The notes beneath the pieces are model-generated. The model saw only the letters and a program-made list of their open reading frames with translations, ran no database searches and had not been told where the DNA came from. Shown here piece after piece: positions 21,903 to 40,961 of a stretch of 64,000 bases of DNA (the first letter of the stretch is position 1; each line of letters starts with the position of its first letter). The stretch comes from Macrostomum hystrix (taxonomy: Eukaryota; Animalia; Platyhelminthes): positions 6,820,001 through 6,884,000 of the forward strand of contig CATNEN010000029.1 in assembly GCA_950097015.1 (NCBI GenBank), written 5' to 3'. Position numbers and translations under genes: made by a program.

Positions 21903-24145
<2,243 letters not shown>

Positions 24146-26001
24146 AATATGTTGTATTTTTAACAAAAAGCCTCTCAAGGCAACTATGTCATTGTGACAT
24201 TTCTACATATAAAACTAGTTATAAAAAAGAAAATGAAAATGACTGAAAAATGAACCTTTCGAGTGAATTGTGTCCCCTTTCTCTTAAGGATTTCACTAAA
24301 AGGACAAAGAAGTTAAAAATCGATTCAGTACTAAAGCATATTTAGTTATAAAAATCTGCTTCATAAATGGATGATAACGGCAATTTGTACAACTCTCTAT
24401 ATCTCAATAGTTTTGTTGTTCATTTAAGAATGTTGATCGAATCTGGACCGGATGACATCAAATGTTTTGAAGTCACGGTAATTGTCAATCAGCTGATTGC
24501 ATTTGTTTTCATTAAATGTTATAAACTTAGAGATGCAAGACAGTATAGATATTTATTTCGTTTCTATGCTGTTCCGTATATTATATAAGCTTTCAATGCA
24601 CTTTTGAAAGCATAACTTTGATTTGTTGTATTTCGTGCCATGCGTAATTAATTTGTCTCTGACGGTGCTTTCTACATACAGCCAAATAGTAAACTAAACA
24701 AGACATTCGCTCCTAGAGCTGCGCTGCGCTAACCTTCCCTGCAACTGATGTCAATGAGAAAACTTTTGGTAGCGAAATTTTGCATACCAAAGAAAATGTT
24801 AAAGTAATATATTTTTAAGTAAATATACTCTAATTCCAATGAACAAAATGATTCTCTTCGTTTATATTTATTAGACTACTTCTGTAAATAGTACCCAGTT
24901 ATTTTCGGCGAGAAGTGGCGACAAAGTTTAAAGATTAGTTTGACCGAAAAGTTGAAAAATGATAAAATAAGTGTTCCAAATCTTCTCCCAAGCGTTACCA
25001 TAATGTGATGGTTAAATACGAGTGTATAATTCTTAGTTTCACAATGTTTTATAACATTCGTAATATATCGTAATTTAAAGATATAAACCAAGAAAAATGC
25101 ATTTTATTGAATTCGCAAAATGAACTACACTAGTACTAGTACAATTATTACTAGAATCGTAAAAGCAATGCGTTTATTGACTCAATTGTTTGATATCTAC
25201 ATTTCTGATATATAGTAAGATATGCAAGAAAACATAACTGGTATTTTAAACTTTGAAGCAGTATTATACCACTTACGCGTATTAATAATAACAATAACCT
25301 TTTTTAAACCGGATGATGTCGACGATAACTAATATAGATAAGAGACAATTATTTTATTGAATATTAGGAAGCTAGTCAGATCCATTACGTTACAAATAGC
25401 TCGTCTGGAAAGCGTGAAATAAAATTGTTAAGCCGTAATTTCAGGTAATGATATAAAACTTACACAACAAAATATGGTACGACGGAGAAGTACTACGAGC
25501 AGCAAACATGAATTCGACAGCTGTAAATGTCTCTTGTCGCCAGCAGCGGATCCAACTGTACAACATGAAACAGGAGTTAGCACGTGTAGAAACAGTGAAA
25601 ATTAAAATTTGACTGCGCTTATCTACAATTTTGAGTGGCTTAACCCACACGGTAATTTAAGAACATACAAGCACATAATACCAACTATACAATGTATTTG
25701 TGTATATACAAACGAAAACGCCAGCAATAAGCAATAGCATGTGAGCTTAAGTTTCAATTCTTATTTTAAATGACACAACAAAAAGCTAAGTAGAATGACT
25801 GGCAGACATTTGTGTCGTCTTTAATGTTGAAACAATTTTTTAGCCCTATCATATTATTTTGCTATTTTACTAAAATTTTCAAAGGTAAGCTTTCAAATTT
25901 GCACCTACATACTTAAGATCTCAAAGCAGACATAAAATTATCAGAAGCCAACGTGTCAGAGGTGCAAATTTTTTAGATACGATCTTCATAGCAGAAGGTG
26001 T

Positions 26002-27273
<1,272 letters not shown>

Positions 27274-27354
27274 CGCTGAATAAATCAAGCTGAAAATCGT
27301 GCAATTAAAACAGATATTACTACCGTTGTTAGTACTAAATGTTTTCGAATAAAG

Positions 27355-28345
27355 CACCGAATGAAGGATTGAAGATAATGACAGCTGAAGCACTGAATGA
27401 AGGATTGAAGATAATGACAGCTGAAGCACTGAATGAAGGATTGAAGATAATGACAGCTGAAGCACTGAATGAAGGAAGGATTGAAGATAATGACAGCTGA
27501 AGCACTGAATGAATGAAGGATTGAAGATAATGACAGCTGAAGCACTGAATGAAGGATTGAAGATAATGACAGCTGAAGCACTGAATGAAGGAAGGATTGA
27601 AGATAATGACAGCTGAAGCACTGAATGAATGAAGGATTGAAGATAATGACAGCTGAAGCACTGAATGAAGGATTGAAGATAATGACAGCTGAAGCACTGA
27701 ATGAAGGATTGAAGATAATGACAGCTGAAGCACTGAATGAAGGATTGAAGATAATGACAGCTGAAGCACTGAATGAAGGATTGAAGATAATGACAGCTGA
27801 AGCACTGAATGAAGGATTGAAGATAATGACAGCTGAAGCACTGAATGAAGGATTGAAGATAATGACAGCTGAAGCACTGAATGAAGGATTGAAGATAATG
27901 ACAGCTGAAGCACTGAATGAAGGATTGAAGATAATGACAGCTGAAGCACTGAATGAAGGATTGAAGATAATGACAGCTGAAGCACTGAAGGAAGGATTGA
28001 AGATAATGACAGCTGAAGCACTGAATGAAGGATTGAAGATAATGACAGCTGAAGCACTGAATGAAGGATTGAAGATAATGACAGCTGAAGCACTGAATGA
28101 AGGAAGGATCGAGGATAATGACAGCTGAAGCACTGAATGAAGGAAGGATCGAAGATAATGACAGCTGAAGCACTGAATGAAGGAAGGATCGAAGATAATG
28201 ACATCTGAAGCACTGAATGAAGGATTGAAGATAATGACAGCTGAAGCACTGAATGAAGGATTGAAGATAATGACAGCTGAAGCACTGAATGAAGGAAGGA
28301 TCGAAGATAATGACAGCTGAAGCACTGAATGAAGGATTGAAGATG
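27355..28345. repeat. 36-bp minisatellite (GAAGGATTGAAGATAATGACAGCTGAAGCACTGAAT)n with 40-bp variants, upstream of the WDR5 ATG
   Basis: About 27 copies by direct reading. Confidence 0.95.
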
Positions 28346-28674
28346 TCAGACGTAAAATTTTGCTAATCAAAAACAGAAGTAAAGAAACAGGGAGGCAACG
28401 TTAAATTGCAAAGAATGAAACTAGCGAAACGTTGTATGTTTATATATTGAAACGGATCGCATTCTCGCCTAACTAATGAATGCAAGTGGCTTCATCGTAA
28501 AAAGCAGAAATCCAGATAAAAATGAAAGCGGCAAATCTCCACAGTGACTTTAGCTTTAGAAAAGGAAGTTTTTTAACTTATAACTAACAAACACGATACG
28601 AATTTTTACTCTTTAATGCGCGTGGTAGATAGATATTGTCCCTATCTACCTTCAATCAAATAGATGAAAATGTA

Positions 28675-29072
28675 CTAGTCTAGAATCCCAATCTACTCGA
28701 CTAGAATCCTAATCTACTAGACAAGAATCCCAATCTACTAGTCAAGAATCCCAATCTACTAGACAAGAATCCCAATCTACTAGACAAGAATCCCAATCTA
28801 CTAGTCAAGAATCCCAATCTACTAGACAAGAATCCCAATCTACTAGACAAGAATCCCAATCTACTAGACTAGAATCCAAATCTACTAGTCAAGAATCCTA
28901 ATCTTCTAGACTAGAATCCCAATCTACTAGACAAGAATCCAAATCTACTAGTCAAGAATCCCAATCTACTAGACAAGAATCCCAATCTACTAGACAAGAA
29001 TCCCAATCTACTAGTCAAGAATCCCAATCTTCTAGACTAGAATCCCAATCTACTAGACAAGAATTCTAATCT
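28675..29072. repeat. 21-bp minisatellite (AGAATCCCAATCTACTAGACA)n
   Basis: About 19 copies between ICT1-like and WDR5. Confidence 0.93.
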
Positions 29073-29188
29073 ACACAACGTGAATCTGAATGATTCCCGC
29101 AGTCAACTGCAATCCATTTAAGAACTAATTATCAGAATCAACTGCACAGATCAGACAAAAATTGACTGATCTGTAGATCTTTTACAAA

Positions 29189-29674
29189 TCATTTTTCAAC
29201 ATGATTGAGAATTCTTAGCCGGCTAAAGCTAAGATTGCCGCCATTGAAGGGCTTAGTCAAGGCAGTCTCTCGATCTAGCGCAGGCAGCTGTCTAGACTCT
29301 AATTTCAGAGCCTGTGCGCTAGTAATGGAAGCAGGCGGTGCCTCGGCCTGTCGTATGCACTCCCGAATGGTCTCCATGCAATCCGCCCGATTCAACAATC
29401 GCTTCTTAGTCCGCTCTGAGGCAACGACAAAGTCGCCGCGGCGGTCAATCCTGTCAGAGAACAGCTGGGACAAGCGCGACTTCAACTGCGGCGGCACAAA
29501 GCTGGCGCCGGCCAGGTTGAACCGGATCTCCACGCGCGCCGACGATGAGCCGTCTAAGCCGACGCCTTCGCTGATGCGCAGCTCATCGATTGGGATTCGG
29601 CCGCTGAATGCCGAGGCGGAAGAATAGGAGCGCCGAAGTAGTTGCGAGCCGGTGGAGTGCAACAGGCGCAACAT
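29189..29674 (-). CDS. MRPL58: ICT1/MRPL58 (mL62)-like mitochondrial protein lacking the GGQ motif; intronless CDS
   Basis: N-terminus resembles a mitochondrial presequence (MLRLLHSTGSQLLRRSYS). The segment IPIDELRIS..VEIRFNLAGASFVP..DRIDRRGDFVVASERTKKRLLNRADCMETIRECI aligns by eye to ICT1 [55 protein letters not shown]. Confidence 0.8.
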   Translation of the reverse strand: MLRLLHSTGSQLLRRSYSSASAFSGRIPIDELRISEGVGLDGSSSARVEIRFNLAGASFVPPQLKSRLSQLFSDRIDRRGDFVVASERTKKRLLNRADCMETIRECIRQAEAPPASITSAQALKLESRQLPALDRETALTKPFNGGNLSFSRLRILNHVEK

Positions 29675-29751
29675 GCTGTGACTGCCGACTGCTGCAAGTT
29701 AGATTGCCGCCTACATTAACAAACTAAACGACAGGATGGCGCATATATACT

Positions 29752-30690
29752 TTTATGAACCCCTATCTACCTTCATGAACTCCTATCTACCTTCATGAAC
29801 TCCTATCTACCCTCATGAACCCCTATCTACTTTCATGAACCCCTATCTACATTCATGAACTCCTATCTACCTTCATGAACCCCTATCTACCTTCATGAAC
29901 TCCTATCTACCTTCATGAACCCCTATCTACTTTCATGAACCCCTATCTACATTCATGAACCCCAATCTACCTTCATGAACTCCTATCTACCTTCATGAAC
30001 CCCTATCTACCTTCATGAACCCCAATCTACTTTCATGAACCCCAATCTACCTTCATGAACTCCTATCTACCTTCATGAACCCCTATCTACATTCATGAAC
30101 CCCTATCTACCTTCATGAACTCCTATCTACCTTCATGAACCCCTATCTACCTTCATGAACTCCTATCTACCTTCATGAACCCCTATCTACCTTCATGAAC
30201 CCCAATCTACTTTCATGAACCCCAATCTACCTTCATGAACTCCTATCTACCTTCATGAACCCCTATCTACCTTCATGAACCCCTATCTTACGTTCATGAA
30301 CCCCAATCTACCTTCATGAACTCCTATCTACCTTCATGAACCCCTATCTACCTTCATGAACCCCTATCTTACGTTCATGAACCCCTATCTACCTTCATGA
30401 ACCCCAATCTACTTTCATGAACCCCAATCTACTTTCATGAACCCCAATCTACTTTCATGAACCCCTATCTACATTCATGAACCCCTATCTACCTTCATGA
30501 ACCCCTATCTTACGTTCATGAACCCCAATCTACCTTCATGAACTCCTATCTATCTTCATGAACCCCAATCTACCTTCATGAACCCCTATCTACCTTCATG
30601 AACCCCCATCTACATTCATGAACCCCAATCTACCTTCATGAACTCCTATCTACCTTCATGAACCCCAATCTACCTTCATGAACCCTAATA
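29752..30690. repeat. 20-bp minisatellite (CCCCTATCTACCTTCATGAA)n upstream of the ICT1-like ATG
   Basis: About 46 copies by direct reading. Confidence 0.95.
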
Positions 30691-31539
30691 TACTTCATTA
30701 GGAAAAAACGAAATTTTCCTCTTAATGGTTGGCAAAAAAGAGAAATGTGTAAAACGAAGCAGCAATAAAAATGTTCACTCAATTTCAGATGTATGAATCA
30801 TATATATTTCTTGCATGCAAAGTTTTAAATCAATCATATTTCAAACGCATCTTGTCACTGATGAAATCCAGGCAGGCAATACTACGATCTATAACAATTT
30901 CACAATTCAAATTGAGAACAGCAAAAAAGTAAAAAAAAACTTTATGCCAGTAAAATAGTAATTAATAAGTCTAATAATAACTAATGCCCCGAATCATAAA
31001 GCAGCATGAAACTGTATTAAAGCTACCGTCAAGATAATTATGATACTCTAAACATTGTACAATTCTATTAATAATAGACAATAGCGATTAATATTTCATT
31101 GATCACAGAACAATATCTACATAGTTGTTTTCAACATTATACAAGTAACTAGGATCTGAATTACACTATGCATAACTAAGTAGAGGAAATTTACCACAGT
31201 GCATTATTTATCTACCGATTCGAGGTAACTGATGCATGCAAGAAATTCAGTATAATATCTATACAAACAAACACTATAAATATATCATAATAACAGTCTT
31301 CAATCGATAAAAAAATCACTAATGTGATTGCTTTTTGTCTCGGAGATTGTGCAAGCGGATTCACCTTGAAGGTTAGATATTTAAAAAGATTATCAAACAA
31401 GACTATAAGACAGATTGGCAGTTAATACAGTTCATATGTATTACAACGATGCCAGATATGACAAACAAGAGCATGCTTTTTAAAAACATTAAGCTTGATG
31501 TTAAATGATGCCACCACGACCACAAGGACAGCAGGACAA

Positions 31540-33366
31540 GTGAGGTGTGAAGTGTGGGTTCCGTTGAAGGACCAGTGAGGTGTGAAGTGTGGGCTCCGTT
31601 AAAGGACATGGGAGGTGTGAAGTGTGGGCTCCGTTGAAGGACCAGGGAGGTGAGGAGTGTGGGCTCCATTTAAGGACCAGTGAGGTGTGAAGTGTGGACT
31701 CCGTTAAAGGACATGGGAGGTGTGAAGTGTGGACTCCGTTAAAGGACATGGGAGGTGTGAAGTGTGGACTCCGTTAAAGGACATGGGAGGTGTGAAGTGT
31801 GGGCTCCGTTGAAGGACCAGGGAGGTGAGGAGTGTGGGCTCCGTTAAAGGACATGGGAGGTGTGAAGTGTGGGCTCCGTTGAAGGACCAGGGAGGTGAGG
31901 AGTGTGGGCTCCGTTAAAGGACATGGGAGGTGTGAAGTGTGGGCTCCGTTGAAGGACCAGGGAGGTGAGGAGTGTGGGCTCCGTTGAAGGACCAGGGAGG
32001 TGAGGAGTGTGGGCTCCGTTAAAGGACATGGGAGGTGTGAAGTGTGGGCTCCGTTAAAGGACCAGGGAGGTGAGGAGTGTGGGCTCCGTTGAAGGACCAG
32101 GGAGGTGAGGAGTGTGGGCTCCGTTGAAGGACCAGGGAGGTGAGGAGTGTGGGCTCCGTTGAAGGACCAGGGAGGTGAGGAGTGTGGGCTCCGTTGAAGG
32201 ACCAGGGAGGTGAGGAGTGTGGGCTCCGTTAAAGGACATGGGAGGTGTGAAGTGTGGGCTCCGTTAAAGGACCAGGGAGGTGAGGAGTGTGGGCTCCGTT
32301 GAAGGACCAGGGAGGTGAGGAGTGTGGGCTCCGTTGAAGGACCAGGGAGGTGAGGAGTGTGGGCTCCGTTGAAGGACCAGGGAGGTGAGGAGTGTGGGCT
32401 CCGTTAAAGGACATGGGAGGTGTGAAGTGTGGGCTCCGTTAAAGGACATGGGAGGTGTGAAGTGTGGGCTCCGTTGAAGGACCAGGGAGGTGAGGAGTGT
32501 GGGCTCCATTTAAGGACCAGTGAGGTGTGAAGTGTGGACTCCGTTAAAGGACATGGGAGGTGTGAAGTGTGGACTCCGTTAAAGGACATGGGAGGTGTGA
32601 AGTGTGGGCTCCGTTGAAGGACCAGGGAGGTGAGGAGTGTGGGCTCCGTTAAAGGACATGGGAGGTGTGAAGTGTGGGCTCCGTTAAAGGACATGGGAGG
32701 TGTGAAGTGTGGGCTCCGTTGAAGGACCAGGGAGGTGAGGAGTGTGGGCTCCATTTAAGGACCAGTGAGGTGTGAAGTGTGGACTCCGTTAAAGGACATG
32801 GGAGGTGTGAAGTGTGGACTCCGTTAAAGGACATGGGAGGTGTGAAGTGTGGACTCCGTTAAAGGACATGGGAGGTGTGAAGTGTGGGCTCCGTTGAAGG
32901 ACCAGGGAGGTGAGGAGTGTGGGCTCCGTTAAAGGACATGGGAGGTGTGAAGTGTGGGCTCCGTTGAAGGACCAGGGAGGTGAGGAGTGTGGGCTCCGTT
33001 AAAGGACATGGGAGGTGTGAAGTGTGGGCTCCGTTGAAGGACCAGGGAGGTGAGGAGTGTGGGCTCCGTTGAAGGACCAGGGAGGTGAGGAGTGTGGGCT
33101 CCGTTAAAGGACATGGGAGGTGTGAAGTGTGGGCTCCGTTAAAGGACCAGGGAGGTGAGGAGTGTGGGCTCCGTTGAAGGACCAGGGAGGTGAGGAGTGT
33201 GGGCTCCGTTGAAGGACCAGGGAGGTGAGGAGTGTGGGCTCCGTTGAAGGACCAGGGAGGTGAGGAGTGTGGGCTCCGTTAAAGGACATGGGAGGTGTGA
33301 AGTGTGGGCTCCGTTGAAGGACCAGGGAGGTGAGGAGTGTGGGCTCCGTTGAAGGACCAGGGAGGT
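31540..33366. repeat. 35-bp minisatellite (GGAGGTG(T/A)G(A/G)AGTGTGGGCTCCGTT(G/A)AAGGAC(CA/AT)G)n with an internal 1085-bp duplication
   Basis: About 52 copies. Identical translated variant patterns occur at 31844-32029 and 32929-33114. Confidence 0.95.
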
Positions 33367-34016: not shown

Positions 34017-37000
34017 CTAAATCATAGTGTTCTTATAGGGAAGCTTATTTCCAGCCGCAGGAGGCCCACCTCGTCCGCCTCGAAGACTAAGCCTAGGCTG
34101 CTGCTGCTGCGGCTGCTGGCTAGAAGACACCGAGGATGACACCTGCCTGTAGACACGCCGAAATTCACCGCCTCCGCCGACGACAACTTGACTTCCAACA
34201 GGCTGGGAGGCCTGCGTAGACTTACCAGATACAGAAGCAGATTGATGATGGGACGGCGGTGAAGGAATATACTTTATTTGCTGCTGCTGCGAGCCGCCAG
34301 CAGTTGAGGCTGCTGCTGATGATGTCAAGCTGGATATGAAAGAAGAGATCAACTTTAAAATCACTAATATAGATGAGGTGAAAAATATATAATTGACACC
34401 TAGCCCATTTGTGCAGCCAATCGCACAGCCGCAGCTATTGTGCGACGCTATGAAAGGCTGTATACAGCCGTGGACTGGGGAAGAGGCCGCCACACACAAG
34501 AGATTTGTGTTGCTTGAGGATAAAAATAGTTACCATTTGGCTGGGATTAGATTTCCATTAGTCTATGAAGGGTAGCAGAAGCGGCACTCACTCCGTGGAT
34601 GAGGACACCGTACTGCCATCAGTGCTAGGCATCCGATCCCGATAGCCAACAGCTTCGGCGCCATCAGCAACAGCAGCAGCAGCATCGGCCGGCCCTGGCA
34701 AAGGCGGCCTATCGCAGTGTTCCTGGCTCTCCTTAACTAGTCTGGCCAGCTCCATCAGTACATATTTGCGACAATGAGCACCCTTCAACAGTTCGCTAAC
34801 TGGCCTCTCCCAGTCACTGGACCAGACCAGGTAGGCGCCGTGAAGGCCGGACTCCAGTAGGTTATCCTCGCTAATTGGCGCGCCCCAGAGTAGAAGCCAG
34901 CTGTACAGACACTGGGCAGACCAGTACAGCAACAGGTGGGAGGCAAATTTCTGTCGAATGTCCAGCAGGCGAGCCCAGTCCAGTCTGACGTAGCGCAACA
35001 GTGCAATGCCATACATTAGACTGCGCCGGTGCCTGTCAGAAATATCATTTTAGACTTTCGCTTTGTCTAAACTCGCGAAATCGAGTTATAAAAGAGATGT
35101 TGCAGCAGTAATTGGAGCAACTTTGAGCCGTTAGAGAAGGGTTTGGGTCGTTAGAGAAGGGCTTGAGTCGTTAGAGAAGGGTTTGAGTCGTTAGAGAAGG
35201 GTTTGAGTCGTTAGAGAAGGGCTTGAGTCGTTAGAGAAGGGTTTGAGTCGTTAGAGAAGGGTTTGGGTGGTTAGAGAAGGGTTTGAGTCGTTAGAGAAGG
35301 GTTTGAGTCGTTAGAGAAGGGTTTGGGTGGTTAGAGAAGGGTTTGGGTCGTTAGAGAAGGGCTTGAGTCGTTAGAGAAGGGTTTGAGTCGTTAGAGAAGG
35401 GTTTGGGTGGTTAGAGAAGGGCTTGAGTCGTTAGAGAAGGGTTTGAGTCGTTAGAGAAGGGCTTGAGTCGTTAGAGAAGGGTTTGAGTCGTTAGAGAAGG
35501 GTTTGAGTCGTTAGAGAAGGTTTTAAGTCGTTAGAGAAGGGTTTGAGTCGTTAGAGAAGGGTTTGGGTGGTTAGAGAAGGGTTTGAGTCGTTAGAGAAGG
35601 GTTTGGGTGGTTAGAGAAGGGTTTGAGTCGTTAGAGAAGGGTTTGGGTGGTTAGAGAAGGGTTTGAGTCGTTAGAGAAGGGTTTGGGTGGTTAGAGAATA
35701 TTCAACGATTCTCGTCGGGGTGTCTAGTGGCAAAATGAACAAATTTTGGCATTGTTTTTGTGCTCACTAAATGTCATCATGTAATCATGTCGGCTATCAT
35801 ATAAAAGCAGTAATTTAAACTTAGCAAGCCTCCCGCAATTTCAGATCGATAAAATTGTTAATTTCTTAATTTTTTTAACCAATATGGATTCGCCAAACAG
35901 GTTTATGTCAGCTGTCCTTGTCACCAGGACTCCGACAAGAACCGCTGAATATCTCGACGATGCATACTCAGACGGTGTTGTAAGTAATTTAATCGCAAAG
36001 GATGGAAAACTTTAATTCAGATAGTGGAGTTTCACAAATATCGGCCATTCAGTTTGGCAGCTATCGTGAATTAGGCAGTGGGTATTTTAAATACACCCTA
36101 TGATCTTTCCACAGGTGGGAGATAGCGTCGTTAGTCATTCTACTGTTAATGCCTTAGGAGAAAATACTATATCCGCTTGTCCCTGTTTAATCGAGACCGC
36201 ATTTGGATATTAGGGTCGTGTAGGTCGCCAGTATCGTTTAGTATTTTTTCAAGATGTATAAATGGCTTCATGGCTTTACCTTCGATGCCTAATAGCTAGG
36301 CAGTTGCCCTTTAGATCTGATTTATCTAGCGTCAATAGTAGACCGCAGTCAACCAGTTCCGAATGGAACTGACTAGAAAGATGACGCAAACCCAGCGACG
36401 GCAGAAGCTGGTCGGCCACCCAGGCAGCGTCCAGGCTGGGCGGCGGCTGTGGCGGTGAGTCGACGCTTGTCCTTAGCCGGTCGATGGCCAGGCGAAGCCG
36501 GCGACGATGCAGCGGCTCGCTGATTGAGAGCTCCCGCTGCATATCGGCGTCGGTTAGGCGGGCAAGAATGTCCCCGGATTTAACTGTGGCCTGCATTTTC
36601 AATTGAAGACAATTTGACATGTCTAGTCATGAATGGTGGACCAAGGATGGTGGACAGTGCCTGAATGATTGTGGACAGTGTCTGAAGGATGGTGGACAGT
36701 GCCTGAATGATTGTGGACAGTGTCTGAAGGATTGTTGACAGTGTCTGAAGGATTGTGGACAGTGTCTGAAGGATTGTGGACAGTGTCTGAAGGATTGTGG
36801 ACAGTGTCTGAAGGATGGTGGACAGTGTCTGAAGGATGGTGGACAGTGTCTGAAGGATCGTGGACAGTGTCTGAAGGATCGTGGACAGTGTCTGAAGGAT
36901 GGTGGACAGTGTCTGAAGGATTGAGGACTGTCTGAATGATTGTGGACAGTGTCTGAAGGATCGTGGACAGTGTCTGAAGGATGGTGGACAGTGTCTGAAG

Positions 37001-40000
37001 GATCGTGGACAGTGTCTGAAGGATGGTGGACAGTGTCTGAAGGATTGAGGACTGTCTGAATGATTGTGGACAGTGTCTGAAGGATCGTGGACAGTGTCTG
37101 AAGGATCGTGGACAGTGTCTGAAGGATGGTGGACAGTGTCTGAAGGATGGTGGACAGTGTCTGAAGGATGGTGGACAGTGTCTGAAGGATTGTGGACAGT
37201 GCCTGAAGGATGTCCACAGCAAGATTGCAGAATACTCGCCTGAAGTCGTTCCGCATAAGCGGCCAGGCCAACACCCGGGCTGGCTGCCCAGGCGGCCACG
37301 TGTTCCGCTCGCCAACGCGTGAGCGGCAGTGACACGGCCTCCCTTGCCAGCTGGTCCTGGCGGCTGCCCCCGCTAGACTTCTTCATTCTAGTTGAGGTGC
37401 GCAACAGTTTCTGACGGCCGAAGCTAACATCGGCCGAGTTCATCGATGTCGGCAAAGGAGCTTCGGGTGACACAGCGGAGGCGGCGGCAACAATGGGCGA
37501 CTCCAACGCGTCGCCGTAGTAGCCGATGTCAGTGCCGCCTAGACGGCGTCGTCGATCCGGACTGTCCTCGGACTGGGCAGAATGGGCAGAGTTGGTGTCA
37601 CCTCGGCCGCTGTCCGCAGCGCTAGCTACGCTGCCGCCAAGCAGTTGGCATTGAAGGCTACGATCGGCATCCTCGTCGGCGCCTGTTATCGCCTGTGTCT
37701 GGGTGGCGGCGCAGACGCACGGTCGCCGATCAGCCAGGGCGGCCCGAACACGCCGCTTCTGCTTGTCTAATTCGTGTTTTAACTTTGCAACCTTGTGTTA
37801 GAAAAATATGAGAAGGAAATAACTAGATTTGCTAGCATTGCTACTGCTTCAGTGAATGTCAGTAGTACTGCAGTCTCAGTACGCATTTTTCATATTTTTT
37901 AATTCTTAGCAGAAACTTTTCGACATTTTTCTGATTTGTATAGAGAAAATGGATTGGAAAAACCAATGTCTGCAGAAATGAGCATTACGTCATTAGATTA
38001 TGTTTATTAAATGGCGGGGCGTCAATAAAAGCCTACACAGTGCCAATTTTGAGCCGAATGCAAAGCACGCGCTTGCACAGCAAGTGTTTTAGCGGTATGA
38101 AGTCATAGTTTGGTAGAATACGAGCGTAAAAAGCTAATTTGAGTCCCCCTTGAGCTGGTTAAATTGCATCTTCAGTGAGTTTTTACAGAAAAAATAAATA
38201 TTATTACTTAATATAACAAGTAGCCCATTGGTTAAAGCAGGGGTCGGCAAACTCCGGCCCGCGGGCCGGCCCTCGAAGCTCCCAAATCCGGCCCGTTGCC
38301 CCTTATAGTATCTTGTCTCATCTCTCCCGTGTCTCATCTCTCCTGTGACTTATCTCTCCCGTGTCTCATCTCTCCCGTGTCTCATCTCTCCTGTGTCTTA
38401 TCTCTCCTGTCTCATCTCTCCCGTGTCTCATCTCTCCTGTGTCTTATCTCTCCCGTGTCTCATCTCTCCTGTGTCTCATCTCTGCCCTATCTCACATTTC
38501 TGTAATCAATGCGGCCCGCTGTCGTCTTTTACGTTTTCTCTTTGGCCCGCTAGCTAATAAGTTTGCCGACCCATTGGTTAGAGCGTCGGACTCATGACTT
38601 GAAGGTCGGGGGTTTGATTCTTGACATCAATGGACAACTGTACTCGGAATTTCTCAAGTTAACCTAACCCAGCTCTAAATGGGTATTGGCTGGGGTATTT
38701 GAGAGCGGGTGTGGCGCCCCCACACCATAGTCGATGGATCGGCTGCACATCTGGCCTAATTTTGTATTAATTTTATTCTTTACAGACTACTTAAAGTATG
38801 CAGTTAGAATATATAGATAGATAACAATTTAGCAGATAAATACAAACAATAACAAACCGTATGGTTACAAAGCTGCTTTCTAATATATAGTATTTATTTA
38901 TAATTTACTCACGGCTACGCGGCTCAGCAGTTGAAAGCAACTAACGGCAATAGATTTAGCGCATAGATTTTTAGATGAGATTAGAAAACTGGTTGAATAA
39001 ACCTGACACACACATAAATTAATAGGTGAAATATTAGATAGCTGTGATGATGTTATGCTATGCCAATTATTTGAGTTTCATTAAAATGACAAATAGCAAC
39101 ACAACTAGCTATGCAAAACGCTGGACTGGCAATTGTTAAAATGCAACTAACTTACCTCGATTTCAGACTGAAATGATGGCAATTTTGTAAATATTTTTTT
39201 AAGAATGAACATACATAGACTAGTAGTATTTCCTCAAGTCTATGGCCCCCACTTTTTAGGATTACGGAGTACTAATTAGGCCTTAATAGTGGCTCGAGGC
39301 TCAATAGTACATTAATACTAGGGGTGTTCCGGGTTCGGGGTCGGGTCGGGTTTTGGTACCGGGTTCGGGGGTAGGGGGTAGGGTGTTCGGGTTCGGGTTT
39401 CCGGGTCGGGTTTTGGCACCGGGCTCAGGGGTTTCCGGATTTTTCAATTTTATTTTAGTTTTACTTAATTAGTATTATGTGATAAAGCGTCTTTCAGAAT
39501 CGCGCCATTTCAAAAAAATTACCTCGTGAACTAAACTGGCGTACGCATAATGCACTGCACTAAGGAAGGACTTAATAATCGTGATCCAGTAATCATTCTA
39601 ATGTAAATATATCATTCTACGAATTTTCGGCCCTGCATTATAATATTCCATAGTGAAAGGAATGATCTATATATCTGAAGTCTAAACTGCATTATGTCTT
39701 ATGTCTTTAATTATGTTTTATTTTACCTAGCCAGCTAGTTAAGTAGGTAATCCCACATCCAGGGTAACAGAGAACTTGTAGACCTTTACTAAACAGAGCA
39801 AATCATATTAATGATTATCTATTCTCTATATAGCAGGTTCGTTTACTGTCATCCATTCATTAAAGCTTTTTAGCGGTTTATTTTTCTAGCATATAAGCTC
39901 TAGCCTTAGCCCTGCTTTTAGCCTTAGCTTATAATTTATGTATTAGGGGCTAGGGCTACACTGTTGCTGACTACTGACTAGCAGCATGTCTGAGACTATA

Positions 40001-40961
40001 AGAGCAGATAAATATGAACACAGTCAGGTAGGTCAGAGTCTACCTGACCTACCTGAACTACATAAAAACCTGCCTAAGGCCTTGAGGAGCTGAGGGTGAA
40101 GTGAAGAGTACGACTGAGGAGTTGAGTAGTGTAGTCATAGTGGGGAGAAGATTTAACAATTGAAAAGGAGATAGTCGGGTAAAGTTCGGGGTCGGGTCGG
40201 GTTTTAAGTCCGGGTCGGGTTCCGGGTTCGGGGTTAAGGGCTCGGGTCGGGGTCAGTGTACCGGGTTCGGGGTACCCCGAACCCGGAAAAATGGAAACCC
40301 GAACACCCCTAATTAATACCCATGCTTCAAGGCGTAAATAGGGGGGAGAAATCAGAGGGCGCCTTCACCCGACACGGCCTTGGAGTCCGTCAGTCCGTAG
40401 CCTACAGCCTGGCTGCGCACTGTCGCGACGGTGGCCGCCTGCGAGAGTTCTAGGCGCACTCTGATTATCTTATTCACGCCCGGAGGGGTATGGGTATTGC
40501 TTTTAACTGCACGGAAAAAAGTTACTAAGAAATATCAATGGCCATTAACGAGCTAGATTTTTTTGCCACCGGGCAAAAAGGTCATGGTACAAAATCTTTA
40601 CCTCGCGCAGGCAAGCGGCTGACTTATCGTTGGACTCGCGGCAGAAGGCCAGCATTTCCAGTTTCTCCTGTTCGCCGCGTTCCAACTGTTCCAATAGGCG
40701 TTTAAGTCTGCGCAGCAGGTCCACCCGCTCCCGCTTCAGGCTGGCAATCTCGCATTTCTGCTGTTGCGCTAGAGAAAGTCTGCGACAGTCGCTATTATCA
40801 TCGGACACTGATAGCTGCACGGAATCGTCGCCACTGTCCGAGTCCACGCTAGTATTAGACGAAGCATCATTGCTGCTGTCGCAGTCTTCTTTGTTGCTTT
40901 TAGTAACGCCATTCTCAGTTGGCGTCGACTTTTTCTCTTTCGAGTCGATAATCGTTGTCAT
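34017..40961 (-). CDS. Kazrin/liprin-beta-like protein: N-terminal coiled coil plus three SAM domains
   Basis: Exons 40961-40602, 37791-37240 (GC donor), 36590-36280, 35032-34592 and 34329-34017 join in phase. SAM motifs: [97 protein letters not shown]. Confidence 0.8.
35128..35700. repeat. 20-bp minisatellite (TTAGAGAAGGGTTTGAGTCG)n in intron 3 of the SAM gene
   Basis: About 28 copies. Confidence 0.95.
36640..37215. repeat. 21-bp minisatellite (TGGACAGTGTCTGAAGGAT(T/G/C)G)n filling intron 2 of the SAM gene
   Basis: About 27 copies. Confidence 0.95.
38215..38755 (+). mobile_element. tRNA-derived SINE interrupted by a MITE
   Basis: Removing 38238-38583 restores GTAGCCCATTGGTTA(A/G)AGCGTCGGACTCATGACTTGAAGGTCGGGGGTTTGATT, homologous to the copy at 3046-3255, including the CCCAGCTCTAAATGGGT and GTGTGGCG body. 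Confidence 0.75.
38238..38575. mobile_element. hAT-Charlie-type MITE (338 bp)
   Basis: TIRs are CAGGGGTCGGCAAACT and AGTTTGCCGACCCATT (2 mismatches), with an 8-bp TSD GGTTAAAG/GGTTAGAG. The left end CAGGGGTCGGCAAACT..GGCCCGCGGGCC resembles the MER58/Charlie terminus pattern. Confidence 0.8.
39319..40311. mobile_element. Non-autonomous hAT element (993 bp)
   Basis: Termini TAGGGGTGTTC...GAACACCCCTA, perfect 8-bp TSD ATTAATAC (39311-39318 and 40312-40319), and subterminal CGGGTT/CGGGGT repeats at both ends. No transposase ORF. Confidence 0.88.

Follow-up and report, generated by a model that had tools for sequence, protein, structure and literature searches.

We describe a homologue of the mitoribosomal protein ICT1/mL62 in the flatworm Macrostomum hystrix that, judged from its predicted sequence, lacks both determinants of ribosome rescue as well as the best-defined structural anchor of the family, and has gained a constrained C-terminal motif. 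The gene was found in a window of 64,000 nucleotides (contig CATNEN010000029.1, positions 6,820,001 to 6,884,000 of the forward strand), to which the coordinates below refer. It is a complete, intronless coding sequence on the minus strand (29189-29674) for 161 amino acids plus stop, with the start codon ATG at 29674-29672 and the stop codon at 29191-29189 according to the ORF list, and it is backed by a PDB match, an AlphaFold2 model and RNA contigs. The exact protein is absent from the public gene-position collection.

The first-pass annotation, made from the DNA letters, had named the product an ICT1/mL62 homologue, and this assignment is secure by sequence and by predicted fold. When all PDB chains were searched with phmmer, the top ten matches were mammalian ICT1/mL62 (E 2.4e-11 to 2.6e-9), the best of them aligning residues 7-141 of the query with chain residues 30-169. 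The family models scored weakly, with 38 bits for NCBIfam ArfB (E 1.1e-9; cut-off 100) and 13.8 bits for Pfam RF-1 (PF00472; cut-off 35). From an alignment of 99 sequences, AlphaFold2 produced a model with a mean pLDDT of 82 and values above 90 for residues 21-110; its domain shows the order beta-beta-helix(62-71)-beta-helix including the inserted helix typical of ICT1. At the top of the Foldseek ranking stands mL62 from the mitoribosomes of human, pig and mouse (3j7y_p with TMt 0.95 and an r.m.s.d. of 1.4 Å over 87 columns; 4ce4_u with TMt 0.85), followed by ArfB (6yss_y). The PDB matches, the model and the Foldseek ranking thus make the assignment secure despite the weak family scans. Residues 23-112 (29339-29608, minus strand) are predicted to adopt the GGQ-domain fold without GGQ, comprising the beta-sheet, the inserted helix 62-71 and a long helix 92-111 (pLDDT 92-98).

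What the domain has lost is its catalytic loop. In the phmmer alignment, the 4+2 gap columns of the window protein fall precisely on human ICT1 SSGPGGQNVNKV, and the remnant of the loop, EGVGLDGSSSAR, occupies residues 36-47 (29534-29569, minus strand), 6 residues fewer than in canonical proteins according to the alignments. In a 119-sequence alignment, canonical ICT1 loops measure 20 residues, that of the window protein 14 and that of its Macrostomum lignano orthologue 22, and neither Macrostomum loop has GGQ. The earlier count of 12 against 18 residues is therefore right within one residue of register, and the loss of GGQ itself is borne out by RNA contigs and by the orthologue. The further statement that no frame encodes GGQ stands for the three coding-strand frames of 29400-29700, where none was found, but not for the antisense strand: one chance GGQ occurs there opposite the DRRGDF codons and was judged irrelevant. 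It belongs to a 140-aa open reading frame on the plus strand (29205-29627) that overlaps the ICT1-like gene and that we rejected as a gene, considering it a mirror ORF of a GC-rich coding sequence.

The Lys/Arg-rich tail of ArfB and ICT1 docks in the mRNA channel and senses whether it is empty. The C-terminal extension of the window protein (residues 113-161; 29192-29338, minus strand) is not basic any more. Behind the domain, the window protein has 7 lysine and arginine residues (net +3) and the M. lignano protein 2 (net -2), compared to a median of 13 (net +5) in the tails of canonical ICT1s (n=79), so the loss of the basic tail claimed in the first-pass annotation was confirmed. A helix is predicted at residues 119-140 (pLDDT 54-84) and aligns to the helix 169-191 of human ICT1. 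These predicted features support well that GGQ-dependent hydrolysis is beyond the Macrostomum protein, which also has no sensor of the mRNA channel of the ArfB type.

Transcripts show that neither the open frame nor the missing GGQ is a product of the assembly. Contigs of four public runs were placed on 29040-29780. Runs X3 and X4 come from an organism B that is identical to the window; in both, one contig of 713-716 nt spans 29040-29692 with zero differences and zero gaps, in agreement with the continuous frame reported before. In run X1, from a close relative or strain (organism A) that is 95-99% alike, a contig spans 29262-29682. The match to the genome ends at 29692 in X3 and X4 and at 29682 in X1, and is followed by letters that are absent from the genome. 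In all three contigs the reverse complement of these letters is (CTG)CGAAGACTCAATTTATTGCAT, which equals the 3' end of the published spliced leader of M. lignano, CCGTAAAGACGGTCTCTTACTGCGAAGACTCAATTTATTGCATG (PMC5173321). The junctions lie 17 and 7 nt before the ATG, at genomic AG dinucleotides, so that contig junctions and genome together place the trans-splice acceptor at AG 29693-29692, with an alternative AG at 29683-29682 and a 5' UTR of 7-17 nt (29675-29693, minus strand). The acceptor used in organism A is located 10 nt further downstream. As the contigs are joined to the spliced leader behind genomic AGs, they represent mature, trans-spliced mRNA that is unspliced within the coding sequence, in three runs of two studies and two organisms. 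At the other end, a leader-bearing contig reaches 29040 and defines a 3' UTR (29040-29188, minus strand) that runs into a 21-bp minisatellite, and the contig end matches the repeat again. The leader-bearing contigs follow the genome colinearly and restore no GGQ, which rules out a missing exon as well as an error of the assembly.

Both runs of organism A (X1, X2) differ from the window by L13F, S44A and T140A, by an in-frame extra alanine in the loop (behind 29536) and by a 2-bp deletion at 29192-29193 in the last codon that would add 12 residues. All of these changes are outside the core and confined to presequence, loop and tail.

Among 5.8 billion clustered proteins and 1.84 billion representatives, the sole close relative is BOX15_Mlig028226g2 of M. 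lignano (P0001; 170 aa, 52% identity). It also is without GGQ, its loop is 8 residues longer than that of the window protein, and its gene (L001:10001-10513) is intronless. The window shares its order of genes with the M. lignano contig NIVC01002073: a SAM-domain gene (34700-40769), the ICT1-like gene, the WDR5 orthologue (26002-26993) and AMMECR1 (22081-24151), all on the minus strand. The SAM-domain gene and AMMECR1 were placed by microsynteny with M. lignano, and the WDR5 orthologue has 97% protein identity to that of M. lignano and matches Pfam Beta-prop_WDR5 with E 2.7e-166. With its 52% identity the ICT1-like gene evolves far faster than its neighbours.

A comparison of dN/dS across relatives had been proposed earlier, and it gives 0.15-0.20 overall at a dS of 1.4-2.1 between the window and M. 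lignano, values that are not near 1 and that are approximate, given a saturated dS and no more than two orthologues. Constraint is unevenly distributed. The core (residues 23-35 and 47-112) has an omega of about 0.10-0.12 with 78% identity to M. lignano, the former GGQ loop about 0.59 with 45% identity, and the tail helix (residues 119-140) about 0.35 with 36% identity. Residues 138-155 (29210-29263, minus strand) form a lineage-specific C-terminal motif, A-L-x-x-P-F-x-G-(G)-N-L-S-F-S-x-L-R, that was delimited by the M. lignano alignment and by omega (about 0.11, 71% identity), and is as constrained as the core. It has no counterpart in the tails of the other ICT1 homologues in the 119-sequence alignment. 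By these estimates, the core and the new motif are under purifying selection.

Could the locus nevertheless be non-functional, either a decaying ICT1 retrocopy or pseudogene or an artefact of assembly or annotation that conceals a GGQ exon? Such a reading would draw on the absence of introns, on the position between minisatellites, on the Pfam RF-1 score of just 13.8 bits (cut-off 35), and on the few differences in organism A, every one of which is either an indel or a non-synonymous change. However, the frame is intact in two species at a dS >1, the core omega is about 0.1, the position is syntenic and a trans-spliced mRNA is present in three runs of two studies. The indels of the loop are in frame, and organism A differs only in presequence, loop and tail. 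A non-functional locus is accordingly very improbable. We reject a pseudogene or retrocopy on the grounds of synteny, dN/dS and expression, and a hidden GGQ exon or assembly error on those of the identical, colinear, leader-bearing contigs over 29040-29692 and the intronless M. lignano gene.

The minisatellites delimit the gene closely. A 20-bp array of 47 copies (29744-30685, TRF) lies directly upstream of the trans-splice acceptor and is not covered by transcript contigs, and the 21-bp array is located at 28669-29074 (TRF). The interval between the two contains the ICT1-like gene only. Further arrays are found near the gene at 27352-28344 and 31533-33366, the units around the gene being 20, 21, 35 and 36 bp long. 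The M. lignano locus is array-flanked as well (L001 8001-8555, 9352-9816, 10976-11045 and 11898-12217) with unrelated units.

Since the gene is real, expressed and selectively maintained without GGQ, a non-catalytic role is required. The first-pass annotation had suggested either a structure-only mL62 or a dominant-negative regulator. In support of the former, ICT1 GGQ mutants lose about 99% of activity and keep mitoribosome assembly, and the GSQ mutant of the human protein still assembles into mitoribosomes (PMC2845271). Moreover, mitoribosome-bound mL62 is inactive in rescue and its GGQ touches nothing (PMC12319706). A structure-only role is thus possible in principle, whereas the missing YSLDK anchor speaks against it. 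Three determinants have been defined for the binding of human mL62 to the large mitoribosomal subunit (mtLSU): BS-1, the N-terminal F/Y-K-S-x-Y-S-L-D-K/R-L-Y-P that contacts uL15m, BS-2, consisting of Y142 and F144, and BS-3, L188 (PMC12319706). The same 2025 study treated the YSLDK of BS-1 as the key determinant of mtLSU integration and argued that teleost ICT1, which is without BS-1, is non-ribosomal (PMC12319706). The window protein has neither YSLDK nor the xYP motif, and just 22 residues precede its domain. Among the two Macrostomum proteins this segment measures 22-29 residues, compared to 50-80 residues with YSLDK in canonical ICT1. Still, a regular expression for YSLDK matched only 29 of 79 canonical ICT1s in full and missed many invertebrate ones, so the motif is not universal. 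In the alignment to the human protein, K91 takes the place of Y142, L93 that of F144 and A138/L139 that of L188, so that the hydrophobic character is matched in part; L93, A138 and L139 do not differ between the two Macrostomum proteins. The missing BS-1 and the only partly conserved equivalents of BS-2 and BS-3 count against a scaffold role, which is plausible but unproven.

Residues 1-22 (29609-29674, minus strand) are presumed to be a mitochondrial presequence on the basis of composition and alignment: they contain 3 basic and 0 acidic residues and an R-3-type cleavage motif, R-S-Y before S (R-S-F before A in M. lignano). We propose that the protein would be imported into mitochondria through this short presequence and would be purely non-catalytic thereafter. 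Its anchor would be the retained domain surface with the helix T-K/R-K-R-L-L-N-R-A-D-C, the equivalent of the human BS-2 region, together with the C-terminal motif instead of YSLDK. The hydrolysis of peptidyl-tRNA on stalled mitoribosomes would be left to another GGQ protein encoded outside the window, a canonical ICT1 paralogue and/or MTRFR. In our view it is somewhat probable that the protein acts in mitochondria without catalysis, most likely as an mtLSU scaffold held by domain surface and C-terminal motif, while another GGQ protein performs rescue.

The other suggestion, a regulator, would have the dead GGQ domain visit the A site or another RNA as an inhibitor, a hibernation-like factor or an RNA-binding protein, and would not make it a stoichiometric component of the ribosome. 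GGQ-less relatives of release factors with new roles exist, among them plant PrfB3, which lost GGQ, and a family of bacterial hibernation factors is reportedly described with the words 'lacks the GGQ' (PMC10901736); the missing YSLDK anchor and the new, strongly constrained C-terminal motif would also fit such a neofunctionalised protein. On the other hand, it has lost the basic tail by which ArfB and ICT1 dock in the mRNA channel, which makes the dominant-negative A-site binder of the first-pass annotation unlikely, and its conserved surface helix coincides with the region of human mL62 that contacts uL15m (PMC12319706). We consider a regulator of this kind improbable.

The scaffold explanation assumes a catalytic partner, and we looked for a canonical ICT1 of Macrostomum in two ways. 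Neither an Opisthorchis ICT1 query nor a profile of 22 flatworm and spiralian sequences returned one among the best 120 matches listed, which include many trematode, cestode, mollusc and nematode ICT1s; both searches were word-index based on a patchy index, and the annotation of M. lignano is incomplete, so this is not evidence of absence. The best Logan match, P0194, was rejected as the Macrostomum canonical ICT1, its AT-rich contigs with no Macrostomum spliced leader at the 5' end pointing to another organism. Alternatively, the GGQ-less protein could be the only ICT1 descendant in Macrostomum. Rescue of the ICT1 type would then be lost and replaced by other routes, such as MTRFR/mtRF-R acting on split large subunits or mtRF1a, and the dead protein would survive for a structural or other role, which overlaps with the scaffold reading. 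In favour of a sole copy, the GGQ-less M. lignano protein is the only close relative in the profile search of 1.84 billion representatives, and flatworm ICT1s (P0003, P0008) are among the best canonical matches to the Macrostomum profile, which is compatible with direct descent from the flatworm ICT1. Against it, the absence of a canonical gene rests on those same best 120 matches of a patchy index and an incomplete annotation, and catalysis by ICT1 is essential in human cells (PMC2845271). Furthermore, the GGQ-less form is an extra protein beside the canonical one in ticks (PMC3472500) and apparently in strongylid nematodes. A sole copy is thus possible, if doubtful.

GGQ-less ICT1-like proteins have been known from ticks since 2012: Duarte et al. 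describe that ticks and mites have 'one extra ICT1 without GGQ' beside the canonical ICT1 and have lost C12orf65, and propose a different, non-hydrolytic function for the extra protein (PMC3472500). No other paper in the searched literature contained a phrase for ICT1 lacking GGQ. New in the present analysis is the extension to flatworms, with a protein from which the tail and the N-terminal anchor are gone too. An exhaustive profile search returned 45 proteins without GGQ among the best 150 representatives; many of these are fragments or gene-model artefacts, and about 20 are full-length with a substituted loop of 8-30 residues. They include proteins from the nematodes Toxocara canis (P0102) and Teladorsagia circumcincta (P0002, TELCIR_18566) together with P0051, from the acanthocephalans Pomphorhynchus laevis (P0042) and Neoechinorhynchus agilis (P0079), from the copepod Tigriopus californicus (P0103, with the RefSeq name 'mL62-like') and from ticks (Ixodes cluster P0045). 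Further full-length examples are P0009, P0011, P0024, P0065, P0098, P0038, P0112, P0137, P0063, P0087 and P0022. The gene model of P0002 carries the GGQ-less ICT1 domain twice in near-identical form, probably by a duplication in assembly or annotation. The full YSLDK-type N-terminal motif is kept in 9 of the 20 proteins, those of tick and copepod included, which fits a structural role of such copies; the nematode, acanthocephalan and Macrostomum forms are without it. A 2025 paper stated that GGQ is fully conserved in the ICT1 of all eukaryotes (PMC12319706), and these predicted proteins contradict that statement.

Neodermatan flatworms (trematodes, cestodes and a monogenean) have a canonical ICT1 with GGQ; hence the loss does not go back to the ancestor of flatworms. 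Among nematodes, trichostrongylids near Teladorsagia possess a canonical mL62, an indication that the GGQ-less form exists there as an additional paralogue. A maximum-likelihood tree of 77 columns, computed without the loop, requires 10 changes of the GGQ-less state. The Macrostomum pair is starred on this tree (98) and is grouped with the acanthocephalans and one further protein at 89, unstarred. If all GGQ-less proteins are constrained to form a single clade, lnL drops by 76.5 units at an AU p of 0.0545 on these 77 columns, a borderline result, so that repeated loss would be favoured over a single origin but is not proven.

Compared to mammalian ICT1/mL62 (MRPL58; PDB 3J7Y chain p, 7NQL), the Macrostomum protein shares the GGQ-domain fold and the C-terminal helix, but it has no GGQ, a loop shorter by 6 residues, no basic tail, no YSLDK and a new C-terminal motif, and its domain is preceded by about 22 residues instead of about 60. 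The tick extra ICT1 resembles it in its general features: both are ICT1-sized and expressed and have an unrelated loop in place of GGQ, and the window protein is likewise conserved in a related species. In contrast, the tick protein keeps YKS..LDKIYP and a basic tail (10 lysine and arginine residues), and it stands apart from the Macrostomum pair in the tree, a separation that was not formally tested. The nematode, acanthocephalan and copepod forms also combine a full-length ICT1 domain with a loop that has no GGQ and whose length depends on the lineage, and those of nematodes and acanthocephalans share short N-termini; they differ from Macrostomum by an identity of just 25-33%, by mostly moderately basic tails and by the absence of the Macrostomum C-terminal motif. 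With bacterial ArfB (YaeJ) and free ICT1 the protein has the homologous GGQ-domain scaffold in common, as seen in the NCBIfam and Foldseek matches (E 1.1e-9; 6yss_y), yet the lack of GGQ and of the basic C-terminal helix makes an ArfB-like action impossible. Teleost ICT1, which also is without the YSLDK mtLSU-binding motif, is the reciprocal case: it kept GGQ and tail and is regarded as rescue-only, whereas the Macrostomum protein lost both (PMC12319706).

ICT1 is unusual in being an essential mitoribosomal protein as well as a rescue enzyme, and the relation of both roles is debated. The Macrostomum protein offers a direct handle on the parts of ICT1 that serve the structural role and bears on the question whether mitoribosome rescue can manage without catalysis by ICT1. 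Dead ICT1 copies are found in at least four other invertebrate lineages besides Macrostomum. We tentatively suggest that the GGQ-less ICT1 may be a recurrent outcome in animals that splits the scaffold from the rescue hydrolase, with Macrostomum as an extreme case in which all known determinants of rescue and of anchoring were shed, a new C-terminal anchor evolved and maybe no other ICT1 is left. If this were true, flatworm, nematodes, acanthocephalans, copepods and ticks would share the same split, and it would not be an oddity of ticks. RNAi and transgenesis are routine in Macrostomum. If its GGQ-less protein were indeed the only ICT1 left, a transgenic, RNAi-amenable flatworm would be available as a natural knock-out of ICT1 catalysis.
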